Assembly: GCA_964252035.1 (NCBI GenBank) | Contig: OZ176200.1 | Length of the DNA: 64,000 nt | Source: Podarcis erhardii | Lineage: Eukaryota | Direction: 5' to 3' (one strand) | Shown here: positions 304 through 62,600 of the stretch, piece by piece | Position numbering within the stretch: position 1 is the stretch's first letter | Layout: each line of letters opens with the position of its first letter | Notes under the pieces: generated by a model | The model's database searches: none | Told to the model about the DNA's origin: nothing | What the model saw: the letters and a program-made list of their open reading frames with translations, nothing else | Program-made: the position numbers and the translations under genes

Positions 304-505
304 CAGTAGGTAAGGACCCTTTTTGTTGCGATGCATGCTGGAGCTGAAGAATGTGGAAACAATCGTTTAAGCAATTCATTGTGGCCATAGAGGTTGCCTT
401 GAGCATCAGCAGGTCTTGGTCCAAGGAAGAAAGATGGCCAGAGGAAGGAAGACATTCTATGTTCCTTATCAAGTCTCTCTGCTGTCCCTCAGCTTGCAAC
501 ATCAT
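304..505 (-). CDS. OSBPL11: OSBPL11 coding exon 6 ([12 protein letters not shown]...KGSLPT)
   Basis: ctag|ATG ATG ... ACT G|gtgagt; 202 nt. Confidence 0.95.
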
Positions 506-27800: not shown

Positions 27801-29013
27801 TAGAAAGAAACAAAATAGCTATTTTGCACAAGCCTCAGTGTTATTTCACACACTGGGAGAAATTCAGTGTTACGCTTTCCTTTCCTGACTGTTCCATCAG
27901 TGGAAGCATTTCTACATTTATCTACTATATATTTTGGAAAGTTCCTTGCATTTGGACACCTCTTAAGATATCATAACCAAATTTTGCATAACCATTTCTG
28001 ATATCAAGGAGCAGGGTTTCTCTATGTTTGGATATAACTGATGCCACTTTGAATCAGAATGGGAGACTGAATCTTTCAAAACTGCACTGATTTTAATTAC
28101 TGATTTCAAAATTGTACTGATTTGGGGGGGCTTCTTAGAATTCCCAAGCAACCCTGGGTACAAAGCTGCTATTTTTAGGTATGTAGGCAACTCTCAACTA
28201 ACTCTGGGGTTATGTTCCGGGAATAGCGCCTAAAATCAAAATCATATATAGTCAAACACACTGGCAGTTCCACCCGCCATTGAACCCAGTGTTTTTAATC
28301 TCAGATGCCCGCCCCCTTTCCATTTTTTTTAATTGGTAAATGAGTGAAGCTGAATGCACACTAGTTAAAAGCATGTAATTTGTGAGTTACCTGTATACCC
28401 AAATATGTAAGCAGCTCTTGCCAAGGGACAATTTAAACATTTGTCAAAGCACTAAATGCTTTAAAGTACAACCCAAAGGAGCGCAATGGTAAACAGGCAG
28501 AAGAACGCAGTTCCACCACATGTGTCCACTGAGTATTCCGGCATATTTAGAAACGTAAATTCCAGCACATCACATTTTACTGTGTTATCATTCCAAAGCC
28601 CTTCAGAATACAAAATAAAACACTTGCAACTTTAGGGTTAGGCCTCTGTGGTGAAAAGTTCAGCTGCACCAGAAACTTTACCAGATGCACATCGGATGGT
28701 TTTAGGTGTATGCTTCCCATTTCTCAATACTCCCCCCTCCCCCCTAAAGAAAGAACCACCACCCACTTAAGATACCAACAAGTCAGTCCCCACTAGGCTT
28801 CAGCAGAGATACTCACCTATACTGCCAGCTTTTGGTAGTGCTTCCTCCTCTGCTACTGCTGATCCCACCACTGCTGATGCCACTACTACTGCTGCTCTTG
28901 CTTGTGCAGTTCTGGGCTGGGATCAAAATCTCCAGCTTGCCTTCACTTTCAGACACTTTCATCGCTGTCGGTGGCGCTGCCGGAGCCGTAGACACAGGCT
29001 CCGCACTTTGCAT
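304..29013 (-). CDS. OSBPL11: Oxysterol-binding protein-related protein 11, 5' part (PH domain and linker; gene continues off the left edge). Coding exons 29013-28817, 9971-9903, 5926-5751, 4352-4273, 3010-2831, 505-304
   Basis: The spliced translation [127 protein letters not shown] closely matches the recalled human OSBPL11 N-terminus. All introns are GT-AG with consistent phases (197, 69, 176, 80, 180, 202 nt). The Kozak context is ccaccATGc. Confidence 0.96.
2831..3010 (-). CDS. OSBPL11: OSBPL11 coding exon 5 ([10 protein letters not shown]...HLIDVRE)
   Basis: cag|AAC AAT ... GAG|gttagt; 180 nt, phase 0-0. Confidence 0.95.
3297..3714. mobile_element. Tc1/mariner MITE with CCGTATTT termini (Tc2/pogo-like); family D
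   Basis: TA|CCGTATTTTTCGCTC ... GAGCGAAAAATACGG|TA. Confidence 0.88.
4273..4352 (-). CDS. OSBPL11: OSBPL11 coding exon 4 ([26 protein letters not shown])
   Basis: Poly-T tract then cag|CT ACT ... GGA AAG|gtactg; 80 nt. Confidence 0.96.
5751..5926 (-). CDS. OSBPL11: OSBPL11 coding exon 3 ([14 protein letters not shown]...SGEQYKLR)
   Basis: cag|G TAT TTT ... CGA G|gtaaga; 176 nt; PH-domain core. Confidence 0.96.
6690..8160 (+). mobile_element. Decayed L2 LINE ORF2 (RT region) relic in an OSBPL11 intron
   Basis: Residual L2 motifs [12 protein letters not shown] (~7682), [15 protein letters not shown] (~7794), [14 protein letters not shown] (~7933) and [14 protein letters not shown] (~8051), with stops and frameshifts; boundaries approximate. 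Confidence 0.72.
7373..7672. repeat. Perfect tandem array, 99-bp unit x3
   Basis: Unit starts at 7373, 7472 and 7571; I found no mismatch between copies; 3-bp TGC microhomology at the array ends. Confidence 0.95.
9903..9971 (-). CDS. OSBPL11: OSBPL11 coding exon 2 ([22 protein letters not shown]; start of PH domain)
   Basis: cag|T GAC CAC ATG ... TAC CG|gtaagt; 69 nt; absent from the ORF track and found by reading the minus strand. Confidence 0.95.
10726..11079 (-). mobile_element. Sauria SINE (slightly 5'-truncated) in OSBPL11 intron 1
   Basis: Reverse complement of the 59442 copy; (TAAAGG)n tail on the plus strand. Confidence 0.9.
11213..11301. repeat. Perfect 43-bp tandem duplication
   Basis: TCATATCTTAGCTTAATAAAGTAAGTTCACTAGGTGCAAATAG at 11213 and 11256, followed by TCA. 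Confidence 0.92.
13290..13450 (+). mobile_element. Short L2 LINE 3' relic
   Basis: Resembles the L2 LDYCN..L..GLP..KLQL region (ttggactattgaaatgc..ggaaactgcagcta); boundaries approximate. Confidence 0.5.
13931..13965. repeat. (CTGT)n microsatellite
   Basis: Read directly. Confidence 0.95.
17257..17494 (+). mobile_element. CORE-type (MIR-like) SINE with (TAAC)n tail
   Basis: tRNA-like head with GGTTCAAATCC, CORE segment GTGACCTTAGGC..GGTTGTTGTGAGG, simple-repeat tail. Confidence 0.75.
18812..18848. repeat. (GA)n microsatellite
   Basis: Read directly. Confidence 0.95.
20455..20960 (+). mobile_element. CR1 LINE 3' relic
   Basis: CR1-like 3' RT and terminal sequence (ttttagtttagggaagaaag; ggcttagacggattcatggagga); boundaries approximate. 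Confidence 0.62.
21888..22031 (+). mobile_element. tRNA-derived SINE with CR1-type 3' tail
   Basis: A box TAGCTCAGTTGG, degenerate B box, then GGACTAGATGACC...ATTCTATGATTCT CR1 tail. Confidence 0.78.
25186..25454. mobile_element. Tc1/mariner MITE with CCGTATTGGCC termini; family E
   Basis: TA|CCGTATTGGCC..ATATAAG ... CTTATAT..GGCCAATACGG|TA. Confidence 0.85.
28817..29013 (-). CDS. OSBPL11: OSBPL11 first coding exon (65 codons + 2 nt)
   Basis: ATG at 29013 in ccaccATGc context; the exon ends TGG CAG TAT AG|gtgagt. Confidence 0.95.
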
Positions 29014-29329
29014 GGTGGAGCCTGTTGGGCCCCTGCCCACCCAAGGGTGGGAGAGTGCAACAAGCCAAGTCAACAAGGGCTTGAGGAAAACTTTTGTTAT
29101 CAAGGCTGTCAAGTATCCTTAGAAAAAAACGAGGGGTCACTCTGGAGTAGAACTTTTGTGAATGGGGCCAAATGTGGGCCAGAGATGGAGCACGTCTGTG
29201 GAAATAAGCTCGAATGACAGCTTTGAAGGGGGGAAAGGGAGAATATGGAGGGGGAAAGAGCCAGGTCTGGGGAAAAGGCCAGGGATCCAACAGAAGAGTT
29301 TCCTGAACACCCAGAGAATGAATCGGGAG

Positions 29330-33107: not shown

Positions 33108-33248
33108 NNNNNNNNNNNNNNNNNNNNNNNNNNNNNNNNNNNNNNNNNNNNNNNNNNNNNNNNNNNNNNNNNNNNNNNNNNNNNNNNNNNNNNNNNNNNN
33201 NNNNNNNNNNNNNNNNNNNNNNNNNNNNNNNNNNNNNNNNNNNNNNNN
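33108..33248. other. Assembly gap (141 N)
   Basis: Run of N. Confidence 0.99.
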
Positions 33249-37379: not shown

Positions 37380-38080
37380 CCTACCGTTGGCCTCCCTGCC
37401 TTCTGCCCAGCGAGCACCAGCCACCACTGAGGTTGGTGGGGCCGGGCTCGTTTGCCCCAATGGCTGACCCAGCAGGAAGAGAGCTACTCCTTTACTTCGA
37501 ACGCCAGCCCGCTGGGCTCCCTGACCCCGATCTTCTCTGACTGGTCTTTAGGGGCTGACCTCCTTCCACCGCGGGCTGGATCCCGGCAGACAAGGCTGCG
37601 CATGCAGGCCGGGGTGTGTCAAGCGTCTTTCCCAGCCTCCGGGATACTTAAAGCGGACGAGCGCCGAACTTGACGCCGCCGGGCGCGAAGGGACCCAGAG
37701 ACGACGTGGGGAGCCCAGACACCATGTCTGCGCTCAGAGTCTGCATTGTCGGTTCCGGGAACTGGTGAGTACGACTCGGACGGAGCCGAGGGGGAATCGC
37801 AGGGGGGCAGAGGACGAAGAGCCCCCTACCCACCCAGCCACCCAGCCACCCACGAGCTGGGTGCATGTGCGCCCTTGCAACAAAAGCCGAGGGTGGCCGA
37901 CGGGCTATCCAGAGAGAGGGCGAGGGAGCGCGGAGAGAGACAGCCATCCCTCTCCGGACCTTTCCTCTCTTGGACACCTGCGCAAAAATGCCAGGTCCCC
38001 CCGCCCCCGCTTCACCTTAGAAAATTTAATCGCCTTTGGATTGCCCCGATCGTTCCCTACGAGAGTCCAGAGGAAACCAG
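37380..38080 (+). promoter_or_regulatory. CpG-rich promoter of the GPD1-family gene with an NRF1-like palindrome TGCGCATGCA (37597-37606) and a TATA-like TACTTAAA (37645-37652)
   Basis: CpG-dense segment spanning exon 1; motifs read directly. Confidence 0.7.
37724..37764 (+). CDS. GPD1-family exon 1 ([14 protein letters not shown])
   Basis: acaccATGt start inside a CpG island; the exon ends AAC TG|gtgagt. Confidence 0.95.
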
Positions 38081-41000
38081 CAGACGAGGTTGCTTAGGCT
38101 GCAATCCCATCCCATTTACCTGGGAGTAAGCCCCACTGAATCCAATAGGGCTTCCTGCTGAGCAGGCATGCTAGTGCTGAGGACGCATCTGTTATGTTCT
38201 ATGCGGCTGCATATGCTCCCCTGAAATGTCAGTACCTTATAAAAACAGGAATGAGGAGCCTCTGGCGCTCCAATGGTTGTTGGACGGTCCATCAGTCCCA
38301 GGCTGCAGGACCGATGTTCAGGGGTGGTGGGAACTGTAGTTCCGCAGCAGCGGGAGGCTACTGGTTGGCCACCTCTGCTATAAAATAAGGGACAAGCGCA
38401 GAGCAGCTCTGTAATCCAAGCAGAAACGCTGTAGACCGATAGACTACAGTCTGTCCGCTGTAGACAGTCGGACAGGCTAGAAATCCCTGACCGACACAGA
38501 CTTGTACCAGTTTACTCGGGAAAAATGCCCCACAGGTTTCCCTAAGACATGTTTCGGACCACAGCCTCCCAGAGCTTTGCGAGAGGGAATCGTTTGTTGT
38601 TTTGCAGCGTTTCCACCTCCAGTCTGAACCATGCTTCATGTGTTTCTATAGCACCTGCAGATCAGACTAGAACATTGGCCTCAAAGGGAATATATCCAGT
38701 GACAGGCTGAGTTCCCCTGGGAGAAAAAGTGCTAGGGGAAACGGGCATGAAAGTGTCGTACATTTTATACCCCCCCCCCTTTGAAATCAGTTTGGGATTA
38801 ATTTCCCAAATTTGTTTTAGATGTGGAATTATTCCTGTGCTTTCATAATATCAGCCCTACATTGAAAGTCAGCATGGGTACTATTTCATAATGTGTACTT
38901 GCAGAGCAAGATGGTGGTTGTGCATCAGAAAGGGGAGGTTTTTGTTTATTCTTCTCAAGCGTTTTCTTTCCATAGTAGCTTCATGTAGGTCTAAGTGAAA
39001 GTCATTAGGACCAACCAGCACAGTTAATAGGACCAAAATGAAAAATTTACTAACACTGACCAAGAAGGACACTTTGGATTTTTAAAATTTATTTCCTAGA
39101 CCAGCAGAGAAACCTGCATTTTTTTGCAGTCATGTCCTCGCAGCGTGGAATACTTTGATACCATCTATGAAATTGAATGTTAGTTTATTTGCAGGAGTTA
39201 CTGGTCTCTCAAGAGAGAGAAATGTTGCACACACCCTGACCGACAGGCCGAGACTTACCGTATTTTTCGCTCTATAACACGCACCAGACCATAACACGCA
39301 CGTAGTTTTTAGAGGAGGAAAACAAGAAAAAAAATATTCTAAACGAAATAGTGGATATATGATTTTTGTGGTTCATGCTGTGGCCGCAGACATGTGATCT
39401 GACAGTGAGTTTGGAGTAGCCCAATGCAAAAATCCTGAGGATCCATGTGGATCCATGCTTTGTAACCACGGAGGAGGGAAGGAAGGGGAACCATGGATCC
39501 TCTGCTCATGACTGCAGCAGATTCCCCCCCGCCACCCGCAGGCATTCGCTCCATAACACGCACAGACATTTCCCCTTACTTTCTAGGAGGAAAAAAGTGA
39601 GTGTTATGGTGCAAAAAATACGGTAATTACAGTCATACCTATTTCTCCCTGTCTTCCCCACCCTTGTCCTTTTCATGTACGTTCTCAGATTACTATGCTC
39701 AGATTTGCATAAAGATTTATGCTTACCTTTCCATTCTTTAAAAGAATAGGGCATTCAGAGACAGGTCTTTGTTATCTTAACATCCAGTTTGGGCACTCAC
39801 CTAGAAATCCACACCAATTGTTCTTATTCCACAGTAACACCACTAAATAAATAAATAGAACCTGCAACTACAGAAATTTCATTATGGCTGTACACCTCAG
39901 CGACCTTTTCTGGTGAGCTATAGAACTCCTTGACCTTAGAGATGCATACTCCATAATGTAAACCCTGGGCAAGTTTCAGAATTTATGTTAAGCAGGGTGG
40001 AGGTTGAGCTTGAAAATAACAGGGAGGATTTGTGTATTTTATTCTTATATTTTCTCTCTTTGTGGCATACTCGAATGATGTCTCAGTTGGTAGTTTGGTG
40101 CAAATTCACCATTGTTTGTATGAAGAAAGAAAAGGCTGATCATGTGAGATGGGACACAACAGCCAAGGGCAGCACAAGATTCCTGTCCGGATAGTTAGGC
40201 AGAGATTATACCTCTTTCAGGAGTGAAAAGGGAGTGGGTGGAGCAAAGGGAGGAAAGCAGTGACAGATGACACAGAGTGTAGCATGGATGAACTGTACCA
40301 ACTCCACATTCAAGGTACAAGCTGTTGGATACTTTCACAGGAAAAGTTCACACCTTAAATCTGCACCTTAAGTGCACCTACGAAGGCAAGCCCTGCAGAA
40401 AGGTAGGCAGGTTCCTTAAGCCTCAACCCACAATGCACCAGAAATGTACCATGACAGATAAAATATGGATGTTCTGCTCCTTGTGCTTTGCCTGCTACTT
40501 GCAATTTTCCCACTCCCAGTTGCATAGCTACAGTTCCTTTGTTGGATTGGAAGCTCTAGCTGCATGTAGATTGGCAGTAGCAGATCCTACACTGAAGCAC
40601 TGGAGATATGGAAAATGGTGGCTGTTACAACTGCTTTGTTGCTGGTCCAAGGGTATACTGGATAGCTGGAGCTGTGCTGTGCTCATGGAACTCCACCCCT
40701 CTGGTGCCCAGAGCATCTCCACTAGTCCCTTGGTAAGCTTTGAAAGGCTAAAGGCAGCACTGGGGTGGGGGCACCAGAGGGTCATTGTTAGGTTTGATGG
40801 AGCCCTGGGCAAGGTGACCCCTGGCAAGCTCCCTCAAACATGGCACCAATCCTGGAAAAGGCCTCTTATTTGCACCCAAACACAAAATGAGCCACAATGA
40901 AAGCTGTCCCCGGACACAACAGCATAGCATGGGTAGCTTGAAATACCAACTTTTTGGTGATATCCTGGCTACATAGGAACTACCTTCAGAAAAGATGTCT

Positions 41001-44000
41001 GTCTCCCCTACAAGAAATAAGAATTGTGCCTTTCATGTACACATGCAGAATGGTTGTGTCTAACAGAGGTTAGACATTTGGTCTTGCAACCCACCTCACA
41101 TCCCACCAGCACCCCAAAATGCAGATGCAGCTCTCATGTGATAGGCTGCAAGTCAGAGTCCTTCAGAGGTGGGGGGAAATTTTGAGCTTTTTTGTCTGTG
41201 AGTTGAGTCAGAGACACTAACCTCCAAGCTTATCTGTAAGATTTGCAGTCAGGGTTGCATTCCTTTAAGCTACCAAAATAGATGTGAAAGTTCAATGGTC
41301 AGCAATACTGTACTTTCAAAAACATCTAAACAACCACTTGCATACTAAACACCCACTTCTCAGTTGTTGTTTTTGGAAGTTTCATAGTCAGGCCTTGAAA
41401 TATTTATTTTCCACAATGGTTTCTGATTTGCTGCTGGTTTGGTTTTATTGTTATTATTAGCTGTTAAATTGACAAACAAAATCAACATTTTGAAAATGTG
41501 GCCATCAAACTGATGTCAGGCATGACATATGCGAACCTGATTCTCAGACAGCTCAATACCACACCTTCCTGTTTCAGATTAGTTGGCCTGAACTCTTGAA
41601 CAACCAATGTTCTTGTTCAATATCCACAATCACAAATGTGGACTTGCATCCCCCACCTTATGCAAATGTTTACTTTTCTTTCATCAGTGTGACTAACTAA
41701 CCCATGTGCAAAAGTTTTGCTTGAAGAGTCTTAAGAAGTAGTTTGTCTGCTCATTTCTGGTGACCTGTGGGTTAGGAGCTCTTCTAGATTGTTGTATATA
41801 CAGTAACTTGTGAACCTGAATTCAATAGGTACCACAAGCTATCTTGTAGAGTCATTAGGAGAATATAAATATATTAATAAAGAAACGTACAAGCTGTCAA
41901 AAGCTTTTTGCCTTCTGATGAAGGCAGCTGCTAGGACATGGCTCAGTGAGGCAGAGAGATCCAATGCTGATATAGCAGCCTTCTCTTAGCTGAGATGACC
42001 TTTGGCTTAGATATGCTTGACACAGACATATGCAAAAAGGTATTGCCAGCATTTTAAAGATTTATTTAAGTTCTAACTTCAGAGGGGTGAGTTTTATGTG
42101 TGAAGTCTGTGGTAGCTCAACACACTCAGACCACCTGAAAACCCAACTTTATTTGTACAATTAATTTGAAAAGCTTTTCAACTGGTCTCTCGGCTGTAGC
42201 TGTATGTTGCTTACATTGCTGTGGAGCAGCTAGAGATACAATTTTGCTGACAGAATTTTGGGACTCCCAGGTTCTGTTTTACTTTCACTTGTTCGGTCAC
42301 AACACAAGGCGTTCAGATATAGCTCTCCTGAGGAAGTTGTGTTTGCTTGAATGACCTTGAATACCATTAATCTGACTTAGAAAAACACAGTGTAACTTCA
42401 CTGGATCTGCAATGGTGACACTCTGATGTTGCCCCAAGGAAGCCATTGAGGGAACAGCAGTGGCGGCAAGTCTCACAGGGGGTGCTCCAGCGGTGGGAGC
42501 CTCCCAGGCTGGCACGCCATGGCAGGCGGCATTTGCATCCCTGGTGGGCAGATTTTCGCGATTGGCACGATTGTCGTCATGAAAATCAGCCCGCCGATCG
42601 CGTAATACCACCCGCTGGGGATGTGAGTGCCGCCCGCCGAGCGGAGCAAACACCACCCGCCAGGGGGTGCCAGGCTGATCACAGGGCATATTTGCACGAT
42701 CAGCGGGCGGATTTTCACGACAGTGATCGTGCCAGTCATGAAAATCCACCCACTGGGGGTGCGAGCGCTGCCACTCCAATCCACCCGGGGGAGTTTGTCA
42801 CCCCCCTAGGCATGACACCTGAGGCAAACCGCACTCCCCCACACCCCCCTTGCAATGCCTCTGGGGGACAGAAGTCCTGGTCTCCTTTCTATTTGCATGG
42901 AACAAGGAGAAAAGCATTAGGAATTATTGTTATAGAGATTAGGCAAGATGGTATGATAATTTAAGTAAGGTTCATGTACTCTTTTGTGTACAGAAGTATG
43001 TTCCCCGACATTTCTCCCCATTTTTATTTTCATTATTTGTTAAGTTTAATATTGCCCTTGTAGATCTCATGGTGGTTCACAACAATTTGCAATATAAAAA
43101 ACACAAAATACAGACTAAAAATAAGAACAAAAACAAGCCAGAAATCCCACATCACATTTAAAAGGGCATTGGATATCAATCAGCCTGAGGCCTGGTTGAA
43201 GAGGAACACTTTCTACAAACGGGGAACTGTTGCAGAAAAGGCCCATTCTCATGTTGCCACCCTCTGGACCTTTCATGGACTCACATGAGGAAAGGGCCTC
43301 AGATTATGATCTCAGGGTTGAGATAGGCTCATATGGAGAGAGGTGGTCCTTGGGGGTATTGTGGTCCTAAGCCATAAGGTTTTATTGGTCAAAACCTGGG
43401 CCTGGAAATTGATTGGTAGCCAGTTGGGCCAGGATCAATGTAATGCGCAGACCTTCTTGCCCTGAATTCTGCACTAGGTGGAGAAGCAGTTCTAGACTAA
43501 CTGTGCACACAACTCTTTAAAGGGGAAACCATACTTCCTCCTCAGTTAAAATCTTTAAGGTCTAAATATGACATAGGTATCTAAACTGCCAATTTTCTTT
43601 GCTAAAAAAACCCCACATGGAATTTTGATGTGGGGTGTTGGTTTTGGCATCCGTCTGTCTTGAAAGACAGTGGAGGGCACCTCCAGGGATGAAGTCAAAC
43701 TGCTATGTTAGCAGCACCAAAGTGACCATCCAAAGTGCACAAGCAGTGCATATGTACAGTACATATGTTGTATACATTGGCAGCCATTTGTGAAATTTAC
43801 TATAGGAGGTAAAGCTTTATAAAGTTTGCTAAATCCAAATTACTATGCCAATTTTGCTTGTGTCCAAATTCTTGAGATATAGTGCTTGTGCAACCATACG
43901 CTTCTGGTGAGTGGGGATGCAATTAACACTGCCTTTAATTATTTGCCTTCTTTTCCTCCCCCTCCCCCACTTTTCTTTTTTTAAAGGGGAAGTGCCATTG

Positions 44001-47000
44001 CAAAAATCATAGGCAAAAATACCCAGAAATCCCTCAAATTTCACCCTACTGTAAATATGTGGGTATTTGAAGAGCAAATCGATGGGCGAAAACTCACAGA
44101 AATAATTAACCAAGACCATGAGAATGTGAAGTATCTCCCAGGGCATAAGTTACCTCCTAACGTGGTAAGTTCAATGTAACTCCTTAACTGTAGTTTCAAG
44201 TTTTAAAGGTAGTGTAGTTGGGCCATAATGGAATGCAATTCAATGTAACAAAGGCTGCTTCCATGCTGGGAATTTAGTGTACAATAGCTGCATTTTGGGT
44301 CGCTCACTTTTTATGAGGCTCATGTGAGCTAAACACCCTACTCCCATGCTTCTCCTTTTTGGCTTTCTTCCACCCCCACCCCATTCCTCAAGCTTAGAAA
44401 AATCTGCCCTTTCTTTAAAAAAACATAGCAGAACAGCTGTGCAGCTTTCCCAGGAGCAGACTGAGAAGGGAATGGTACTCAAAATCTATCAGAAGGATAA
44501 TGCAATTGATTAAAGAGCAGCATAGGTACACACAGACATTGATATGAGTTGTGTGTTATCTAAACTAGAGAAGAAATCCTGGCACAGCTGACAGAACAAT
44601 GCAAGAACCTTGTGAGTTTTGCAACTGGTTAGGCTTAGATACATTATTTGTCTTCAAACCTACTCGGTATTCCAGAATACTCTGAGGACCTGCAGACCAT
44701 TGTGTCCCAAATTGTAGAATGTGCACAACAAAGACAGGACACGAGGTTGATCCCCCCCCCCAAGTGGCTGCCAAGCTTGAGGCTCTAATCCTATACACAC
44801 TTACTTGAAAGCAAGCCTCACACCACTGGACTTACTTCTGAGCAAACATTGATAGAATTAGGTTGCTAAGAGAACTGAGCTAAGACACTTCAAGAAGTTT
44901 TTCAGATGCAAAGCTTAAATCTATGTTTACTTATATATAATATAAATGTAAAAGAGTGGTTTCTCTCTCTCCAAATATTCATTTGCAGTTGAACATTGTG
45001 TTTTCATGTGAGTTAGTAGATTAATGTTATTTTGTACGGACCTCAATTCAGGACAGCTGGCCCTATTAAGACTGCTGCAAAAAATACTTGTGTTGCATAT
45101 ATGGATGTGCCTTCCTGAATGCACAACCCCAGGAAATACACATTGCATGCTCAAAATGTGTATATATGTGAATGTCATCTCGATCCACTCTTGCCGCTAT
45201 GGGAAATGCTGCTGGATAGCTGTCCTTGTTTGTTTTTCAATAATAGAATGTGTAAATTTTCTTCTTCTTTTTTGTTTCAGGTTGCTGTAGCAGACCCAGC
45301 AGAAACAGTAAATGGTGCAGACATTATAATATTTGTTATACCTCATCAGTTCATTCCTAAAATCTGTCAGCAGCTAACTGGCCATGTAAAACAAGGAGCC
45401 ATTGGAATTTCGCTAATCAAGGTAGTTTGTGAACCTTTCCCAAGGGGTAGGACTGGTTAGGGAGAAAATGGAACAGTGAAATTTCCAGGGTCTTGACTGC
45501 ATATAGGGTGCAGCAGGGGCACCAACCTGAATAAAATATTGTGGGGGCCCAGGTAAGCCCCACCCCACATAATCAATAACATGTGTCACGAACGTGGCTC
45601 ACCTGAGCGCAGGGGAAGAGTCAGACTCAGAAATTGAGCTAAGTGAGAAACCAATTTTATTGGGAAGGCTGAAGCCCCCATTGTCCCTAGGAGTTGGCTC
45701 CTATGGGGTGAAGACAAAATTGTTTCTAACATTGTGTTTTAATTGTTATAACCTGCCTTGGGTGATAAATAATATTAACTCTAGAGCACACTTCCTCTCT
45801 GCCTACAGTCGGAATGAACCATGCCTCTGGGTTGGTTTCAAGAGCTATGGACACCCCGAGATGCAGAACAGAAGGCAAAAGTGCCATATTTGGAAAGGAC
45901 TAGTCATTTCCCCACAATATATTATTTTATTTTCTAAAGCTTATGTTATTATATAAAAAGTTGGCTATGTAACACACATCAAACAATCTTAAGAGAAATG
46001 TACTGTGTGGGTCATAACCAAGATATTTATCAACCCAACAACGTGCTGTCTGTTCCCATTATCCTTTGTTGTAAACAACTTCTGCACAGGCTCAATTTCA
46101 TAGAGTACAACAGGATCAGATCTATGTTTCATCTACTGAAGTGCAAGGAAGGCTAGTCTTACTTTTATTCACTGCCTTCCTGTTAAACAGGGCATAGACG
46201 AAGGCCCTAAAGGACTGAAACTCATATCGGACATCATTCGAGAGAAGCTGGGCATAGAAGTCAGTGTACTCATGGGAGCCAACATCGCAAATGAAGTGGC
46301 AGATGAAAAGTTCTGTGAAACCACCATTGGTAATTCTGTGTTCAAGACTAATGACTAAACGAGGGATCAGTTCAGTCCACTTACTCAAAATATAGATCCA
46401 GAATGTTTCTCCTGCTCCACTTTGTGGTGATCTAGAAGATATATCTGTGGATCTATAGCTGCTGTGATGAGACTTCCCCCCACCCCCACCCCAAAAAACC
46501 CTTGCCAACTTTGTTTGTTGTTGCAGTGTTCTGCACAACCCTGTAAGAATGAAAGGTAGCAGCTGGTCAAAGGTCACCCAATGAGATTCATGGATGAGTG
46601 GGAATTTGAATTTGCGTCTCCCTAGTCCAACACTCTTATCCTCTACATCTCACTGACACTCACAGCTGACCTAGGTGGTTTTTATTATTATTGCCCATGC
46701 TTTTGCAAATGGGAATGTTTGTAGCATTTGAATACAGGCATTCTTGTGTTTTCGGTAACACAGCACTGAAAGCGTATTTACAAATCATTATTGAGCATCT
46801 CTCCCTATAGAAAGCTTACTGGGTTTGGGTATGGTGAGTCTAATGGTGAGTCACAAGCATAGCTGAGATTAGAAGAGATGCTTCCATTTAAGTTAAAGTC
46901 ATATGATATGCTGTTACTTGGCCATTACCTCAGTCCTAATTTACTGTGCTTCTTTTCATAGGTTGCAAAAATCCTGAAAGTGGGAAGATCTATAAAGAGT

Positions 47001-50000
47001 TGTTGCAAACCCCAAATTTCAGAATTACTGTGGTAGATGACTGTGACACCGTGGAGCTCTGTGGAGCCTTAAAAGTGAGTCATTCCAAATCAAATATTGT
47101 GAGGCCAATTAAAGTTTTTTGCAAGCTGTGTGGCCAGCTAAGCTTTCAAAAATTTTTTCACAGGTTTTCTCATTCATTTGTTCACTGGTTTTACAAATCT
47201 GTAAAATGGGAGAACTGTACTTACATCCCACTTGCTATACTAATTAAAAATGGCCTTGATATAGGTTGGACAATAGCTGGTTGTTAAATCGCTGCCACCA
47301 ATTAGGAAGCAAATATATGTGACTTGTCACCTCAGAAAAAATGTAATCCTTTGGACATACTATTCTCAAGTGAATTTTCTTGGCTTTGATGTAGGCAGTG
47401 GGGAAATATGTCCAATGACTTCTTTTTTAAAGCGAGATCTGTTAGTTTTATGTTGGGCTCTTTTTAGATGACTTTCTAGGCAACGTCTGCACTGGAGTTT
47501 GTAGGACATATGATAAAGTACTTTTTAGAGATTTGTTGAAGGTGGGACAACATACACATACTTTTGTCCACTATGAGGAGTTGTGAAATACTTCTCTTCA
47601 GGTTTCTGATAGAGGAAGAAAAACCAGCGTCCACACAACACCATAGGCATTACTCTATAACACATCCAAAGTTGTTTTCTTCTAGGTCAGACTATTTGTA
47701 GATCAGCTCTGTGCTGTCTACTGCTGTCATTAGTAGAGGCCCTTTAATATCACTCTCTACCTGACGCTTTTAATTTGAGATGCAAGGGAATTTGGGATCT
47801 TCCGCCTAAAAACCATGTGCTACAGAGCTATGATCCCTCCCTCATATCACTATCTCACTTAAAAACATTCAGTACAAGGATACACCTCATTAGCTGCTTT
47901 GATCCTATGGAAATGTCTCACCAGCTGCTTTGATTCTGTGGAGATAAACAAGAAGTGTGGCTTGTTACTACCAAGACATATTTTAGCAGCATATTCTTCA
48001 ACTGCAGCAGCACTTCTTATAGTGACCAGACTTGCAGACACCACTTGCTGAATATATCTGAATAGACCACTGAACTGCATGCAGTTTTGCTCTTGGGGGC
48101 ATTTAGGAGCAACTGAATAGAGAAATGCAGCTGTTGGAATGCATTTGCGAATGGCACCTTTTGCTAAGCATTCATGCTTTCTGAAGTCATTAAACACGAT
48201 GCCTTTGTCTCATGTGATTTTTTTCTTCACTCTCCTTTTCTCCCTCTGTTCCAACTGGATTTAGAATATCGTTGCAGTAGGGGCTGGTTTTTGTGATGGG
48301 TTGGGCCAAGGTGACAATACCAAGGCAGCTGTGATTCGTCTGGGCCTAATGGAAATGATTGCCTTTGCTAAACTCTTTTGCAAAGGCCCTGTAGTAATAA
48401 ATACATTTCTGGAAAGTTGTGGTGTTGCTGATCTGATTACCACATGCTACGGGGGACGCAACAGGAAGGTGGCTGAAGCTTTTGCACGTGGTGGAAAAGT
48501 AAGTATTTCGCCCCAAGATTAATTGCTGTAATGGGTACACTTTTGTCTTATCAGCCCTTTCCCAATAGTATTCTGCATTTACTTATGAGGACAGGGGGCA
48601 TATCTAACTAGTATATTACAGTATGCATTTGTTTGTGGATGAGACCAGTGGTAGTGACCAAGGCCCCTTGCTAATAACTGACTTTGTGTGATGTTAAACT
48701 TTCTAAAATGGGCATAATATGGAGAAAGTAGATAGAAAGAAGCTCTTCTCTTTCCTCCTTTCATAATATAACCAGGCACCATCCAGGAAAAAAGAATGGT
48801 GGGAGATTCAGAAAAAGAAAGGGACATATTCACACCATGTAACTGTGGTATCCATTCCCAGAAAATGATGTGATGGTCTTCAACTTAGATGGCTTTAGAA
48901 GATTAGACAAATCAGTGGTGGGTATCTGCCACTACTCAACATTATAGCTGTTTCGGCTTTCTAGTGTCACACAGAGTTTAGCTGGAAATAATACCAAATG
49001 AGAGATGCCTGTCCTAATTTAAAAACACATACGTTTTTAGTATGTATAAGTAAATCTTGGGTATTGCTTAGATTGGAAATAATAATTTTGTGCAGACTCT
49101 ATTCTTTGCAAAAGAGAACAAAGGGAGTTCCAGCTTCAGCACTTTCACATTTATTACTTAGTTTTAAATGGAGTTTAGTGATGCAGTTTCCTTTAAACCA
49201 AATACAAATGATCTAACACTCTTTAAAAATAATTTCCAGACAATTGAACAGCTAGAAAAAGAAATGCTGAATGGGCAAAAGCTACAAGGGCCTCAAACAT
49301 CTGCTGAAGTCTACAAAATCCTGAAGCAGAAGAAAATGGTTGACAAGTACGTAGCTTGACTTTCTAGTAAATATCCTGTCTGAGAAGTCAGAGTATTCTC
49401 TGCACTTTGCTGGCTCCTTTGGCCATGGAAAAACCCTTGGGTGTCTCTGTTGTGAGCCATCACTAGGGTTGGGGGATTAGTTTGTATTTAAAGGTAAATT
49501 TACATAATTCACGCTTTCTGAGAAGGTATGGGAACCAAAACACACTCATCATTCAAACATCACACTTCTCTGAATTTTGCATGTAGTTCTATGGCCAAGC
49601 AATGTTTACAAAATGCACATAGTAGGATAAAGTGCACATCTAAGTGAAAATAACATACAAAATGCATTAAATTATGGAAAACTGATTTGTAAATAACATG
49701 TATAATGAGAAATCAGCTTTAAAATGCCGGTGAATTTTCATGAGGCTTCTTATTAAAAAAATTGCAAATTGACGTGGAAATGTTGAGAACTGGACTTGAG
49801 ACACAGAGAAACAGAAGTTGATATTCTCCCATTCATACTTGCTACAGTGCTTTAAAATATTTCAATAGTATTCTGTCCTGTATCTAATCATAAAGTTTAC
49901 ATCATGCATCAGCCATGTACAGAAAAGCCAGCTAAAAATGACCTTGCTGGTAAAAACTTAAATTGGTTGTATTTTGCATGAAAATTTACTTTAGCAATTG

Positions 50001-50109
50001 CATTTCTCCCAGGTTTCCATTATTTGTGAACGTCTACCTGATCTGCTATGAAGGGAAGTCTATCAAAGAGTTCATCACTTGTTTGCAAAGTCATCCGGAA
50101 CACATGTAA
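37724..50109 (+). CDS. GPD1L2: Cytosolic NAD-dependent glycerol-3-phosphate dehydrogenase, complete, 349 aa; GPD1/GPD1L family, probably the GPD1L2-type third paralogue. Exons 37724-37764, 43987-44164, 45281-45421, 46191-46329, 46962-47074, 48265-48498, 49240-49346, 50013-50109
   Basis: Exons of 41+178+141+139+113+234+107+97 = 1050 nt give an uninterrupted [18 protein letters not shown]...CLQSHPEHM*. The GxGxxG motif and F41, F97, K120, K204, D260, R269, N270, K296 and Q298 sit at the human GPD1 positions. The family call is near certain. The paralogue symbol is inferred from synteny and is less sure (it could be annotated GPD1L-like). Confidence 0.93.
39258..39623. mobile_element. Family D MITE in opposite orientation, GPD-gene intron 1
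   Basis: TA|CCGTATTTTTCGC ... GCAAAAAATACGG|TA; its right end is the reverse complement of the left end of the 3297 copy. Confidence 0.86.
42458..42863. mobile_element. GC-rich hAT-type nonautonomous element with nested inverted repeats
   Basis: Degenerate TIRs CAGTGGCGGC / GCAATGCCTCTG; 8-bp TSD GGGAACAG / GGGGACAG (7 of 8 match). Confidence 0.7.
43030..43440 (-). mobile_element. L2-like LINE 3' relic
   Basis: Similarity to squamate L2 3' ends (gaaaaggcc..tgccacc on the plus strand); boundaries approximate. Confidence 0.5.
43987..44164 (+). CDS. GPD1-family exon 2 (GSAIAKIIG...HKLPPNV)
   Basis: tttttttaaag|G GGA AGT ... GTG|gtaagt; 178 nt. Confidence 0.95.
45281..45421 (+). CDS. GPD1-family exon 3 (VAVADP...GISLIK)
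   Basis: tttcag|GTT ... AAG|gtagtt; 141 nt. Confidence 0.95.
46191..46329 (+). CDS. GPD1-family exon 4 ([18 protein letters not shown]...FCETTI)
   Basis: aacag|GGC ... ATT G|gtaatt; 139 nt. Confidence 0.95.
46962..47074 (+). CDS. GPD1-family exon 5 (CKNPESG...VELCGALK)
   Basis: catag|GT TGC ... AAA|gtgagt; 113 nt; ends at catalytic K204. Confidence 0.95.
48265..48498 (+). CDS. GPD1-family exon 6 ([12 protein letters not shown]...[17 protein letters not shown])
   Basis: tttag|AAT ... AAA|gtaagt; 234 nt. Confidence 0.95.
49240..49346 (+). CDS. GPD1-family exon 7 ([18 protein letters not shown]...MVD)
   Basis: tccag|ACA ... GAC AA|gtacgt; 107 nt. Confidence 0.95.
50013..50109 (+). CDS. GPD1-family exon 8, coding part (FPLFVNV...HPEHM*)
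   Basis: cccag|G TTT CCA ... CAC ATG TAA. Confidence 0.95.
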
Positions 50110-54241: not shown

Positions 54242-54527
54242 CAGTGGTGCCCCGCAAGACGAAAAACTCGCTAGACGAAAGAGTTTTCCGTCTTTTGAGG
54301 TGCTTCGCAAGACGAATTTCCCTATGGGCTTGCTTCGCAAGACGAAACGTATTGCGAGTTCTTGCAAGTTTTTTCCCTTTTTTCCCCTTTTTCTAAGCCG
54401 CTAAGCAGCTAAGCCGCTAATAGCGCTAATCCGCTAAGCCGTCAATGGGCTTGCTTCGCAAGACGAAAAAACCGCAAGACGAAGAGACTCGCGGAACGGA
54501 TTAATTTCGTCTTGCGAGGCACCACTG
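54242..54527. mobile_element. Tc1/mariner (Tigger-like) MITE, complete; family A
   Basis: TIRs CAGTGGTGCC(C/T)CGCAAGACGAA; TA on both sides; many internal GCAAGACGAA motifs. Confidence 0.9.
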
Positions 54528-56620: not shown

Positions 56621-59600
56621 CTAAAACAAATGTTAAAATGGTATTAGCATAGTTTAGGTACTTTTGCAGATGCTGTTCAAAATAGTCCTTGACAAACAGG
56701 AATAGAGGCAGATGCTCTTTGAGAGTCTAAACCTTAATTCATCATTTTTCCAAACTAAAGGAAGAGAAGGAGGGGGAAAGAGTTTTCCAAAGCCTAATTG
56801 AATTGTCTGTTTTCGTCCTGCTCTCCTCCTCTAAAACCACTGTAGTGTAAAAAAGTGAACTAGTTCTCCGGTTTGCTAGGAATATAATTCTGAAAATGCT
56901 ACAAAGAACATCACAGCAAAACAAAACAAGAACTCTCTATTTCACTTAATGACTTTTGAAGGGTTGCTTACCAATAGATGTGAGTCTTGTTAAATTAGCA
57001 ACTGGAGGAGGATCCTGCTCAGGTGGGCAGAAATCGCAGAAGTCTGAACACGCTGGGCAAATTAGGTTCCCAATATGTACCCATCCATTCATCTGAATAT
57101 TCACTGTTAGGATTTGACCTGAGCGACTGCACAAATATGACTCATCCTTGACCCAAACAGTCAGCCCACGGGGAGAACAAGAAACCTAAGAAATAAAATT
57201 GGACTAGCTAGATTATTGCAAGCATTTATTTAATTTTTAAACCAAGTCTTTTAAGAGACATGTTGCTTGTAGTCGAGCTGTCAAAAGGAAAAGCTAGAAC
57301 AATTTGTGTGTACCTTCACTTGTTTGCATGCAGATTTGGAAGATGACAGATTGTTGTTCAGGCCGTGTAAGAGGGTATATGCTCACTTTAGAGACTTATA
57401 CTGTTGGCATAAAACTAATGGGCATGAGGTAGGGAGATATTTTGACTTCCACATGACTATCTGGTCTAATACAATTAGATACAAATATAGAAACATGTAA
57501 TGACTAATTAAGAGCAATAATGATTTCTAAACAGCACAACTTTACAAAATGCAACCTTAAATTAAGAGCTCCTGCAGTTACCTGGTAACAGCCACTGCCC
57601 CAGTCAGGGTAACTGAGTTTCTTTCTGCATTGTTCCATAACAAAAGCTGACTTCTGAATGAGACACACAGAATTTGGTCCATATTTCTCTGCACCATAGT
57701 TTTTGAAAGGATCTAAAAAAACCAGGAAAGCACTGTTAACACATACTGTGGACTGCTAACCAGCTTCAGACTATGATTTCAGATCCTAGTTTCTGAGCCT
57801 GAAACAAACCTGGGTAGACTCAGATACAGATGCAACATGACAACCATGGGTTAAGCTAAAGAAGCTATGGGTTTCCCTTATATTGGAACCCAAAATTTCT
57901 GAAAGATATTAAAGGAAAAAATAAACACAAAACCAACTGACCTGGTTGATTTTCGAGTATTCTACAGTCTGAACTTCGCTGAAATTCACCACTTAAGTGC
58001 CAGCTAAATTCCTGACTGAATGGACAGAAGTCCGCAATTTCAACAGACCCACCATAATAAGGCAAATCTTCTGATGGTACCCCATAAAGACGGTCAAAAT
58101 ACTGCAAAAGATACAGTGACAGAGGCAGCTATGAAGGTAGAAGAAGCACAGTAATATCATCACCATCACCTGGTAGTAATAGCAAACTTTAACAACATGT
58201 TAAAGAGAACCAAAGCACAAAGCTATAGTTGCTACTGCCATTAATAATTTTTATTTTAGGACCAACAGTATTGCTAGGTACTGCACATACAAGTCTGTTA
58301 AGCACAAGAAATGCATTCTCTTTTGACTGTGTGTTGTCTGAACCCTAAACGACGGTTAATCTTAACTATGGTGAGTGGAAACAAACCAGCTGCTTAAACT
58401 ATGATTTAAAGTTGACTTGTTTCAACAAACTACAGTTTGTAAGTGATTCAACAACAAATCAAGCTGAATCTAAAATGGAAGCAAAAGCTTCCAAATTCTT
58501 CCTTGTGGTTGCACTGGAAGAGAAGGAGGAAGTGTCCAGCCCCTCTGCTTGTTCTCATGTCTGAATGAGACTGGTGGTTCATAGAACTCACATAGAGTCA
58601 CACCCTTTATACCTGATATTCCTGAGGAAGCTGCTGTGGGAATTTCTGTAAATTGCACACTGCCACTGCTCTTTGGTCCTGTCTGCAGGTTAGCTGCAAT
58701 GGATTAGTCCGCAGAGTGTCACAATATGGATCCACCAATTCTTTCCTGTGAATAAAGTTGAAAACCACAATAAGGGAACTTAAAATCTTTTTATACAACA
58801 CTTAACAAAAAAAATCACTACTAACCAGACAAACATTAATAGGCTATTGCAATGCCACTGGCATCACAGAACATGCAATCTAAAGAAACATATTCTTACC
58901 TTCTCCTCTTGTGATCAATCCAAAACTTACAGCTTTTCATCACAAAGTCACAGCCTTTATCTCGGCCCCAATCAAGCTTTTCTGCCATGTTGTAATTGGC
59001 TTTATACCAGCTGTAAACATATGTTGAAACAGAAATGCTATTATTGCACTTCTGAACAGTCAGCAAAAAGTCATTTCAAAACTCTTGCATGTGTTAATCA
59101 AGCTACCCAATATGAACCATTTCCTAATGCAGGTAGAGCAAGAAAAGGCAAATGCATTTCTACAAACAGGCACACGTATTGTCGCCTCCAAGATTGCTGC
59201 TCCTCTTTTGGCTTAAGAAATGACGCCAAAAAATGGAATTGCTCTTCTCTTTCAATGAAGGAATAAACAATGAAGGCGGGGGGGGGGGGGGGGAGAGATT
59301 TCAACAGTTAGCGCTAATGCCACTCTAAGGGAATTCAACTCTGACTAGTTATTGCCAGCCTTTTCCACCCCCCATTATCCACTTTCAACTGGAGGGAAAT
59401 GCTCAAGAATTACGATTAGTTCAGGAGTATCCTTAATTTGAGGGACGTGGGTGGCGCTTTGGGTTAAACCACAGAGCCTAGGGCTTTCTGATCAGAAGGG
59501 CAGCGGTTCGAATCCTCGCGACGGGGTGAGCGCCTGTTGCTTGGTCCCTGCTCCTGCCAACCTAGCAGTTCGAAAGCACGAAATGTAAGTAGAGAAATAG

Positions 59601-62600
59601 GTACCGCTCCAGCGGGAAGGTAAACGACATTTCCGTGCACTGCTCTGGTTCGCCAAATGCGGCTTAGTCATGCTGGCCACGTGACCCGGAAGCTGTACAC
59701 CGGCTCCCTCGGCCAGTAAAGCGAGATGAGCACCGCAACCCCAGAGTAGTCTGTGACTGGACCTAATGGTCAGGGGTCCTTTACCTTTTAACCTTAATTT
59801 GATTATACAATTTCACATTGCACTAGCAGATAAATGGAAAATGAATGGAGAAATTTTGATTTCAATTTCATGTTAGAATTTAAGTTATTCAACTCAAGGT
59901 ATAGGCTTTTCACGTGCATTAAAAATAGCTGACTGGAACATGCAAATCCAGAATGGAAAGATTAATCTTAAGACAAAACCTCACATGAAACCCCAATATT
60001 TACAAGAACAGGGAGCGGCAACAATATCAACAAAATGATTTGCATAGAAATGTTGCATTGTTTCCAAAGCCTAAAATTCAAACACCTCCAACTACATAAG
60101 TTTCTTAACTATGTATTTAAGATCTGTCCAAACAAGGCATATTTATGAGAAAACCAAAACCAACTATACATCCTTACCCAGTGTCTTCCATTAATGCCAA
60201 AGTGATGCGGGAGAAGACCCTGTTCTGAGTGTGCGATCCAGTCATAGCTTCATTCTGAAAGTAACCACCCAAAAAACCCGTAAGCTTCGTGACAGAACAG
60301 CAACTCATTCCTCGTTTTGGGGTTGGGGAGAAGAAAGAATGTGTACCTTTGGGCATAAGCACTTATTACATAGGCCCATTAATTGTTTCTAACATTTTCT
60401 TGGTTATTTCATTTATGATCCCTCCCCATGAAATGGTCTGAAGTGATTTACATGTAAGTGCTATTCCTAAGCCAATTCGGATAAAGTCTGAGATAGTCTT
60501 CATCTCCACTTAGGAGGCCTGATGGTAGAGGATTCAATAGGTGTTTAAAGCCAGTGAAGATGGCACCTCCCAGGTTTATAAAGGTGTGGTTTCCAAAGGG
60601 TAGGCACTGCCATGCCACACTAGACGTCTAATTCCCACACTGTATGGGACAGGCTTCCTGATGAGCTGATATCTGTAGGAGGCCCTCTCATCACGGTATA
60701 AGTGTATAAGCTGACCACAGAATGAGGAGTTGCATGTAGTCAAACACTAGGGGACTGCCCTAAATTGCTCCTCTGGTACTGCTCATTTAAAACAAATAGT
60801 AAGAAATGGCAGAGTGGAAAGGTAAAGACAAATGAAGACAAAGGTAATAATTACAATATATCTTCTTTATATATTCAATATATATTCTTTATAATGCATG
60901 GTATTCTTTCACAAAGCAAGCTGTGCTGCTCCTCTTTTAAAAACTGCTTTATATAATCCCATTTTATCTAGATTGCAGTGACTGTCCAATTAACAAGTTC
61001 TAAGGGAAAGATTAAATAAAATCTGATGATGGGGGAAGGAATCTTTCCAGTGATAAAGCCTACTTTTAAACTTTCATCAATCTGCCATCCTGGAGACAAA
61101 GTATCCGATATCACAAAAACCTGTATTTCAGTCTATGATCACCTCGCAAAAAACCCAATAGCTACTGTATTATAATTAACTGTACTGACCTCCAACAATC
61201 TCTTTTCCCAATGATTGAGCTCTGTACCCATGCCACCTTGATTTTCAAGTTCCATCCCCTCTAGAAATTGACATCCAAAGTGTTTTCGGGCCTCCTCCTT
61301 CAAAAAGATGCACCAGAAGACCGCTGTCAAAATAATTAGCAATACCCTTCCTTGAGAATCAAAACTAACCCCCCCCCCATATTTTAAGTTCCCAGGAGGG
61401 GCTTCCTTCATCTTGCACAGATTTCCAATGAAAAGGGTCCCTCAATTCTTCTTCCTACATGTGTTGAAATGTGAGGCTGCTATCATAATGTGGTTCACAT
61501 GACTGGCAATAGGCAGCCATGCTGGACGGCAGAACAGGCAGGCAAGCAAGCAGTGTGGGTGGCAGGTGCCCCAGGCAAGATGTTTGGGAAGAGAGGCACT
61601 TCATAGAGTGATTTGCCCAGCAGCTCCCTGAAGTGCTTCCCCTGTTAAATACAGCTGCAACAATTGTTAATGGAGGGAGGAGGCACTTCAGAGAGTGGTA
61701 TTGGGCAAAAAAAAGCCCCTCCTTTAAAGCTTGGGGTGAGGGGAAGGGCAAGGTGTAAAGGGAGAAGGGGTTACATATACATGGAGAAGGGAGGATTGTC
61801 AAAGGGGTTGGTGGGTAGGTGAGGTTAGTGAATGGAACGAGCCGGAGATGGAAGCTGCTAGTAAGAAATACTATTTAAAGTTCATGAACCTGAGAGTAAT
61901 AATAATTAAAAAGTTTAAAAATTAATTCACCTATATGAAAAACATAACACGTTCTGATCTCATAATACCCATAATTTAAAGTCTTCAGAATGATTCGGTT
62001 ATTTGAATCACTTGGAGGAGAAAAAGCATATCTAACAGGTAGCTATGCAAGCCACAATGTGAACAGGCTTTTGCCCAACTTCCTTCCGCTTTAGTAGGCT
62101 GAAGGAATACAAGCAGCAACCCAGTGCTGAAGTTTTGTGTCTCTGCTGTGGCTTCATGCCACTCAGGTTCTATGGCGGCATGATGGCAGCTTCCATGCAC
62201 AGCTTGAGATCTTTCCTTTAGGTCTCTCATTTCTTTGAACTGATATCTTTGGCACACCTGCGATATCCGGAACCAACCCCATTCCCATGTCTGTGGGTGG
62301 CCTTGTTCTGGTGCTCTAGTAGTTGGAAAAGGGCCAGCCACTTTACTATTACAAGGATTGATCATTTTTCTAATGAGAATTATTCCTTTTGACATGCACT
62401 ATTTTACCAGTAAGCAGCTTGCCAGGGATACTGGGAGTAAGCTATTCCTATAATTCTCAAAGTGTTAGATAAACCTCCTAAAGAAGGCAAGGTAAATTGT
62501 GTAGATGTCCTTATCTGAGGAAGTTAGTTAGATTTATTCTGATAAAAAGTGAAAATGATACTTACAACTACTTTAGGAGTTATCAGAAGGAATACATTGT

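Follow-up and report, generated by a model that had tools for sequence, protein, structure and literature searches.

A gpd1c-type glycerol-3-phosphate dehydrogenase gene between OSBPL11 and LMLN in Podarcis erhardii, a probable member of a third vertebrate paralogue group

The window, a stretch of 64,000 nucleotides of contig OZ176200.1 (assembly GCA_964252035.1) from the lizard Podarcis erhardii, contains one complete gene for a glycerol-3-phosphate dehydrogenase (GPD) and parts of its two neighbours (Table 1). The GPD gene was rebuilt from the window sequence with eight exons on the plus strand. All introns start with GT and end with AG, the phases are consistent across the eight exons, and the coding sequence of 1050 nt is translated into 349 amino acids and is followed by a TAA stop codon ending at position 50109. 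Thus, the gene bounds proposed in the initial annotation (37724 and 50109) are exactly the start and the stop codon of the rebuilt model, and its description of an intact protein of 349 residues with a first exon of 41 nt and the C-terminus HPEHM proved correct, as did every protein motif that it quoted. Past the stop codon, AATAAA/ATTAAA signals occur, the first at 56 nt and others at +1231 and +1658. A CpG-rich stretch spans exon 1 and is likely the promoter of this gene. Scans of the 64-kb window for Rfam families and tRNA genes gave no matches.

Table 1. Features of the window (nt, numbered from its first letter)
Feature	Position	Strand	Observations
OSBPL11, stop-free segment with exon 1	28816..29118	-	ATG at about 29013; peptide starts MQSAEPVST
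OSBPL11, stop-free segment with PH-domain exon	5740..5970	-	PDB 2D9X, human ORP11 PH domain, E=4.9e-35, ~96% identity
OSBPL11, other exon segments	9902-10066, 4231-4422, 2747-3103, 263-505	-	
CpG-rich stretch spanning GPD exon 1	37501..38500	.	GC 0.65 and 0.53; CpG obs/exp 0.75 and 0.56
GPD exon 1	37724..37764	+	41 nt; ATG at 37724, GT donor at 37765
GPD exon 2	43987..44164	+	178 nt; AG/GT, phase 2 in; PF01210 E=5.6e-10
GPD exon 3	45281..45421	+	141 nt; last residue is the catalytic K120; PF01210 E=1e-9
GPD exon 4	46191..46329	+	139 nt; PF01210 E=1.5e-9
GPD exon 5	46962..47074	+	113 nt; last residue is K204
GPD exon 6	48265..48498	+	234 nt; substrate-binding C-terminal domain; PF07479 E=3e-25; human GPD1 6E8Y E=2e-41
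GPD exon 7	49240..49346	+	107 nt; Q295, K296, Q298
GPD exon 8, coding part	50013..50109	+	97 nt; HPEHM-TAA end
LMLN (leishmanolysin-like, Peptidase_M8) exons	56949..63476	-	PF01457 E=2.9e-8 and 1.2e-5
LMLN, stop-free segments	63294-63476, 61142-61441, 58899-59075	-	HEIIH zinc motif in 63294-63476
LMLN, further stop-free segments	57868-58128, 57507-57755, 56949-57185	-	

The neighbours named in the initial annotation were both recovered. The exons of OSBPL11 occupy the minus strand between about 29.0 and 0.26 kb, so that OSBPL11 and the GPD gene are arranged head-to-head with about 8.7 kb between their start codons, and a further CpG-rich stretch (29.0-31.5 kb) lies alongside. The N-terminus beginning with MQSAEPVST is presumably that of ORP11, and the match of the PH-domain exon shows that the neighbour is the gene of ORP11 and not of ORP10. 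LMLN lies on the other side, tail-to-tail with the GPD gene.

The domain content of the product is that of a GPD. Exons 2, 3 and 4 all exceed the gathering cut-off of 23.1 bits for the NAD-binding Rossmann domain (PF01210), and exon 6 scores 89.4 bits for the C-terminal domain (PF07479), where the cut-off is 25. Exon 1 encodes 13 residues and two nucleotides of the codon for W14, and the NAD fold with its GxGxxG motif begins there. The glycine residues of this motif (G10, G12 and G15) are invariant across 104 aligned sequences, and the same applies to K120, K204, N205, D260, T264, R269, N270 and Q295, five of which (N205, D260, T264, R269 and N270) are encoded by exon 6. We take these eight to be the catalytic and substrate-binding residues known from the structure papers on human GPD1, whose numbering is used. 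Human GPD1 (PDB 1X0V, 1WPQ, 6E8Y) and GPD1L (PDB 2PLA) share the fold families and catalytic residues with the protein from the window, and human GPD1 is also of the same length; both are nevertheless paralogues, which belong to other clades and have other neighbours. Exon 6 shares about 92% identity with the human GPD1 structures; its scores are 142.8 bits for GPD1 and 135 bits for GPD1L. Over its whole length, the protein has 75.6% identity to horse GPD1 and 76.7% to bat GPD1L. The residues E81 and A278, which had been pointed out as matching positions of Brugada variants in human GPD1L, are both present. They say little, because both positions vary within GPD1L itself (among 21 GPD1L sequences, D in 11 and E in 10 at the former, V in 15 and A in 6 at the latter).

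The gene is real and already known, and it is annotated in close lizard relatives, albeit under inconsistent names. This follows from the comparison with the RefSeq protein XP_028599771.1 of Podarcis muralis, which is identical at 345 of 349 positions (98.9%, both 349 aa, without gaps) and differs only by R5K, V9I, H33N and L181F. Full-length orthologues are also annotated in Podarcis lilfordi, which is unlike the protein from the window at three positions, P. raffonei, Lacerta agilis and Zootoca vivipara; none of the five lacertid proteins is an exact match.

Database searches were run exon by exon, and the joined model of 349 residues was used for BLAST against fetched proteins, for the alignment and for the trees. 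A search of representative sequences with exon 6 yielded mostly exon-sized fragments and no near orthologue. Nor could the gene be placed with a mammalian GPD1L as the query, because all matches came from the GPD1L clade. True orthologues were found with a homologue profile made of the exon rows aligned on two scaffolds, one from a shark and one from a fungus.

In the maximum likelihood tree of 104 proteins (support given as UFboot/SH-aLRT), the protein from the window falls into a third clade of 41 rows (96/98), which was recovered in 96% of the bootstrap trees. Its members come from sharks, ray-finned fishes (here named gpd1c), the coelacanth, amphibians, turtles, birds and squamates, and none from mammals; every mammalian match was either GPD1 or GPD1L, in agreement with the absence from mammals that had been proposed. 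The GPD1L clade (100/100) excludes the protein from the window. The GPD1 clade (95/78) comprises 37 of 38 rows, with one lungfish sequence of GPD1 type outside, and the third clade is sister to it (93/78), the backbone of the three clades being only moderately supported. The claim of a third paralogue distinct from GPD1 and GPD1L is therefore upheld by the tree, and the AU tests described below agree. The accompanying view of a gene retained specifically in sauropsids has to be given up, as sharks, ray-finned fishes, the coelacanth and amphibians also keep a gene of this clade, which must thus predate the tetrapods. The teleost gpd1c proteins of Sander lucioperca and Archocentrus centrarchus, which share the clade, have 349 aa and 79% identity to the protein from the window, from which they are separated by about the split of bony fishes and tetrapods. 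In Pleurodeles waltl and Latimeria, GPD1, GPD1L and the third paralogue occur together.

Could the gene be a GPD1L orthologue that has moved from a site linked to OSBPL10, where human GPD1L presumably lies, to its place beside OSBPL11? The RefSeq name of the Podarcis orthologue is 'GPD1-like protein', and GPD1L proteins are, with 76-79% identity, approximately the closest ones outside its own clade. Nevertheless, such a relocation is hardly conceivable: apart from the exclusion from the GPD1L clade, a tree joining the tetrapod third-clade and tetrapod GPD1L sequences was rejected by the AU test (p=4.9e-91), the adjoining gene encodes ORP11 and not ORP10, and snakes, iguanians (Phrynosoma) and geckos (Sphaerodactylus) carry a separate GPD1L of 353 aa. 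A lacertid GPD1L was not among the matches listed. An origin from GPD1, either as a tetrapod- or sauropsid-specific duplicate or as a relocated orthologue, would fit the sister position of the two clades, the equal length of 349 aa and the residues in common with GPD1 (C168 and, in the consensus of the third clade, F219 and N344). It is highly improbable all the same, since the clade also holds sharks, ray-finned fishes and the coelacanth and the joining of tetrapod third-clade and tetrapod GPD1 sequences was likewise rejected (p=0.0007). Moreover, a separate GPD1 was found in Podarcis muralis, P. lilfordi, P. raffonei, Lacerta, Zootoca, Anolis and Tiliqua. The lacertid GPD1 falls within the GPD1 clade, and in Podarcis, Lacerta and Zootoca it lies on a chromosome-sized contig other than that of the gpd1c-type gene (in P. 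muralis on a contig of 126.8 Mb, the orthologue of the gene in the window on one of 137.3 Mb).

An intact-looking copy could also be silent or decaying in Podarcis erhardii. This is very unlikely in view of the complete reading frame, the intact splice sites and catalytic residues, the CpG-rich stretch at exon 1, the short terminal branch (0.012) and the small number of differences, which amount to 3-5 residues to the three other Podarcis species and 8 to Lacerta. We infer that the gene is expressed in this species.

The locus is thus very probably the lacertid orthologue of the vertebrate gpd1c gene, encoding a cytosolic NAD-dependent GPD (EC 1.1.1.8). It represents one of three ancient paralogues of jawed vertebrates (GPD1, GPD1L and the gpd1c type), which presumably arose by whole-genome duplication. 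The gpd1c-type gene has persisted in lineages ranging from sharks to birds and squamates, and its absence from mammalian protein sets probably reflects a true loss.

The protein had also been described as a mosaic of GPD1 and GPD1L, but this turned out to be a surface impression. In all three clades, 214 of the 349 positions are identical, and at 80% consensus only three positions separate the clades, two of them common to the third clade and GPD1 and one to the third clade and GPD1L. The supposedly GPD1L-like residues I122 and S344 vary inside the third clade. An origin by recombination between GPD1 and GPD1L, or by gene conversion, was dismissed: too few positions discriminate the clades, and they also vary inside the third one. 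Most of the substitutions listed as private are not so, and only V248 and Q44 are restricted to Podarcis and the window.

The names in use for this orthologue group are 'GPD1-like protein', 'GPD cytoplasmic-like', 'GPD1', 'GPDA', 'GPD1L protein', 'gpd1c' and 'GPD1L2'; the labels in reptiles and amphibians are 'GPD1-like protein' or 'GPD, cytoplasmic-like'. Some shark proteins of the GPD1L clade are named '1c'. The chicken member of the third clade (XP_040531605.2) is 78.5% identical to the protein from the window and, by elimination, is most probably the chicken GPD1L2; some isoforms among the bird models have N-terminal extensions. Since GPD1 is the sister clade of this group (93/78), 'GPD1L2' is a misnomer. 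As a consequence of the inconsistent naming, studies of expression or of disease genes in which knowledge on GPD1L, for example on Brugada variants, is carried over to birds or reptiles can hit the wrong gene.

Chicken GPD1L2 has been detected as RNA and as protein, with expression in adipocytes, muscle, ovary and seminal plasma (PMC8182436, PMC6794883, PMC13330670, PMC11602595). The fish gpd1c gene, which in zebrafish is ENSDARG00000036942, is transcribed in trout (PMC7413064). The enzymatic activity of the lizard protein is predicted from its domains and conserved residues. The N-terminal Rossmann domain would bind NADH, and the C-terminal domain, with K120, K204, N205, D260, T264, R269 and N270, would bind dihydroxyacetone phosphate. 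Dihydroxyacetone phosphate would then be reduced to glycerol-3-phosphate, which may serve the synthesis of glycerolipids as well as the cytosolic half of the glycerophosphate shuttle.

A literature search for a paper on the evolution of this family or on its loss in mammals found none. It is possible, if rather doubtful, that three points have so far not been formally stated: the gpd1c genes of fishes, GPD1L2 of chicken and the 'GPD1-like' or 'cytoplasmic-like' genes of reptiles and amphibians may form one orthologue group, its sister may be GPD1 and not GPD1L, and it may have disappeared from mammals. The main value of the finding lies in annotation, and no new mechanism is implied. If the proposed grouping is true, non-mammalian vertebrates would run a cytosolic glycerol-3-phosphate dehydrogenase system of three isoenzymes, of which mammals would have a reduced set, and the third isoenzyme, which in chicken is known from adipocytes and seminal plasma, would serve a function that in mammals is left to GPD1 and GPD1L alone.

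The GPD gene, which encodes a predicted cytosolic NAD-dependent glycerol-3-phosphate dehydrogenase, is real, intact and correctly delimited. Reconstruction of the exons placed the ATG and the stop exactly at 37724 and 50109, as proposed in the initial annotation, and the joined coding sequence comprises 1050 nt (349 codons and TAA). All introns start with GT and end with AG, and their phases are compatible. Exon 1 lies within a CpG-rich stretch (GC 0.65, CpG observed/expected 0.75), and the nearest polyadenylation hexamer is located 56 nt 3' of the stop. In one region of intron 1, both strands carry long overlapping ORFs (160–172 aa) that contain a degenerate repeat. This region was not reported by TRF at a score of 100 and is likely a decayed repeat rather than a gene.

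The location between OSBPL11 and LMLN (leishmanolysin-like peptidase) was also described rightly, as shown by matches to PDB 2D9X and PF01457 in the window. Since the first exons of OSBPL11 lie upstream on the minus strand, this gene and the GPD gene are arranged head-to-head, with an ATG–ATG distance of about 8.7 kb; the LMLN exons lie downstream on the minus strand, and LMLN is therefore tail-to-tail with the GPD gene. The N-terminal peptide upstream is one which we take to be that of ORP11 (OSBPL11), and the PH-domain exon is identical to the human ORP11 PH-domain structure at almost all residues. The perfect tandem repeat in an OSBPL11 intron gives rise to long ORFs on either strand that are spurious. 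Interspersed repeats, probably SINE-type elements, occur as paired copies in OSBPL11 introns, GPD introns and the GPD–LMLN spacer. Neither tRNAs nor RNA families were found in the whole window with ARAGORN and Rfam.

Features of the window; the coding exons of the GPD gene were read from the window itself
Feature	Position	Strand	Evidence or remark
GPD coding exon 1	37724-37764	+	
GPD coding exon 2	43987-44164	+	
GPD coding exon 3	45281-45421	+	
GPD coding exon 4	46191-46329	+	
GPD coding exon 5	46962-47074	+	
GPD coding exon 6	48265-48498	+	
GPD coding exon 7	49240-49346	+	
GPD coding exon 8	50013-50109	+	
ORF region, GPD intron 1	42297-42964	both	
OSBPL11 N-terminus	28816-29118	-	stop-free segment, peptide start MQSAEPVST...
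OSBPL11 PH-domain exon	in 5740-5970	-	PDB 2D9X, E=5e-35
Further OSBPL11 exons	reaching 263-505	-	stop-free segments
LMLN exons	downstream of GPD gene	-	PF01457
LMLN HEIIH zinc motif	63.3-63.5 kb	-	stop-free segment translation
Tandem repeat, OSBPL11 intron	7373-7672		99 bp x 3.0 copies, 100% matches
Interspersed repeat pair	25-219 and 54002-54400		similar conceptual translations
Interspersed repeat pair	10782-11036 and 59495-59812		similar conceptual translations
Interspersed repeat pair	3250-3444 and 39506-39754		similar conceptual translations
Run of 141 N	33108-33248		assembly gap or masked; between OSBPL11 promoter region and GPD gene

Homologue searches were made exon by exon, and the joined GPD model was compared locally only. 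A profile (A3), in which every GPD exon formed a separate row beside two scaffolds (a shark and a fungal protein) aligned with MAFFT, recovered a large set of 349-aa proteins. Its best match was Podarcis muralis XP_028599771.1, with 98.9% identity across all 349 residues. The 90% cluster of this protein contains full-length proteins of P. lilfordi, P. raffonei, Lacerta agilis and Zootoca vivipara, which differ from the window protein at 3, 5, 8 and 15 positions, respectively. These matches place the window in a lacertid lizard close to Podarcis, and they show that RefSeq already contains the gene with an identical exon model. Members of the GPD1 clade were obtained by searching with a bat GPD1 protein; among them were those of Podarcis, Zootoca, tuatara, crocodilians, birds and turtles. 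A mammalian GPD1L query yielded GPD1L-clade proteins only, and their identity of 76–79% to the window model is too low for orthologues. One 339-aa protein of the representative library (P0054) is chimeric, with about 195 N-terminal residues of a GpsA-like bacterial type and about 145 C-terminal residues of mouse-type GPD1. This record, probably an artefact of assembly or contamination, was left out of the analysis.

The initial annotation had proposed a third paralogue beside GPD1 and GPD1L, and this reading was borne out by the maximum-likelihood tree (IQ-TREE, LG+C20+F+G4 by PMSF; 104 proteins, 350 columns; rooted with one fungal protein and two distant full-length matches of the representative search). 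The window protein falls into a third clade of 41 sequences (96/98), whose branch separates these sequences in 96% of bootstrap trees. The GPD1L group (21 sequences, 100/100) extends to proteins of chimaera, skate and shark and has a lamprey protein as sister (92/87), and the GPD1 group (95/78) holds 37 of 38 sequences, with one lungfish sequence outside. A translocated GPD1 or GPD1L orthologue would nest within one of these groups. Such nesting was not seen, and the AU test rejected both forced trees, i.e. tetrapod third-clade proteins with tetrapod GPD1 (delta lnL 66, p=0.0007) and with tetrapod GPD1L (delta lnL 116, p=4.9e-91). GPD1 is the sister group of the third clade, a relation that is moderately supported (93/78).

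The clade is not a sauropsid speciality, as had been assumed. Besides two turtles, six birds, eleven squamates and the window protein, it holds seven amphibians, coelacanth, two sharks, sturgeons, paddlefish, a bichir relative, gar, bowfin and teleosts, two of whose proteins carry the NCBI name gpd1c. Mammals are missing from it among the 104 proteins of the tree. All three genes occur in Pleurodeles waltl and likewise in Latimeria. GPD1 and the third-clade gene were both detected in Lacerta, Zootoca, Anolis, Tiliqua, Paroedura and Pantherophis; in P. muralis, GPD1 (XP_028566573) lies on a 126.8-Mb contig and the orthologue of the window gene on a 137.3-Mb contig. A 353-aa GPD1L was found in Thamnophis, Vipera, Protobothrops, Crotalus, Phrynosoma and Sphaerodactylus, and no lacertid GPD1L was among the matches listed.

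Mammalian matches in three search lists were GPD1 or GPD1L in every case, among the matches listed. Because an intact mammalian member should outrank these matches in the A3-profile search, these searches support the absence of the third-clade gene from mammalian protein sets; the mammalian LMLN–OSBPL11 interval is a separate matter. For crocodilians and tuatara, GPD1 was found, and no third-clade protein was among the matches listed in the A3-profile and bat GPD1 searches, which could reflect a second loss or merely which matches were listed. Some GPD1 models of hamster, yak, sheep and crane (P0335, P0360, P0371 and P0384) possess an extra PF14880 (COX14) domain. These are fused models and indicate that GPD1 adjoins COX14 in mammals and a bird, a locus unlike that of the window gene.

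The supposed mosaic of GPD1 and GPD1L features is a surface impression; 214 of the 349 positions share one consensus across all three clades. Positions that distinguish the clades at 80% consensus number just three, and the third clade has none of its own. The residues called GPD1L-like vary or are rare within the clade (I122, 20 I and 21 V; S344, S in 3 of 41 sequences), and its consensus equals GPD1 at C168, F219 and N344. Of the substitutions regarded as private, V248 and Q44 alone are restricted to Podarcis and the window protein. E81 and A278, which had been related to Brugada variants of human GPD1L, are present; the matching positions vary among GPD1L proteins, and therefore nothing follows for these variants.

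PF01210 (N-terminal NAD-binding domain) was detected on exons 2–4 and PF07479 (C-terminal domain) on exon 6, both over the curated Pfam cut-offs, and exon 6 by itself matched the solved human structures of GPD1 (E=2e-41) and GPD1L (E=6e-39). The window protein has the residues that are catalytic or ligand-binding in human GPD1 (K120, K204, N205, D260, T264, R269, N270 and Q295) and the GxGxxG loop, and none of these varies across the 104 aligned sequences. Its terminal branch in the tree is very short (0.012). Judged from its sequence, the protein is most likely an ordinary cytosolic glycerol-3-phosphate dehydrogenase. It would reduce dihydroxyacetone phosphate with NADH, and the glycerol-3-phosphate formed would serve glycerolipid synthesis and the glycerophosphate shuttle.

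For orthologues, expression has been documented. In trout, gpd1c transcripts are present at the primitive-liver stage and thereafter (PMC7413064). Chicken GPD1L2 is reported to be highly expressed in abdominal-fat adipocytes (PMC6794883) and raised in myopathic breast muscle (PMC8182436), and its protein was reportedly detected in ovary (PMC11602595) and seminal plasma (PMC13330670). By elimination, GPD1L2 is very probably the chicken third-clade member XP_040531605.2.

Three shark proteins named 'glycerol-3-phosphate dehydrogenase 1c' (P0248, P0239 and P0270) fall into the GPD1L clade (100/100), and in the true gpd1c clade sharks are represented by P0438 and P0439, which bear the name 'cytoplasmic-like'; public names appear to be swapped in cartilaginous fishes. 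With GPD1 as the sister group of the third clade, the name GPD1L2 is misleading. The window gene itself is ordinary; it is already part of the annotation of congeners and has names in fish and chicken, and the main use of the finding is that it flags the inconsistent names within this orthologue group.
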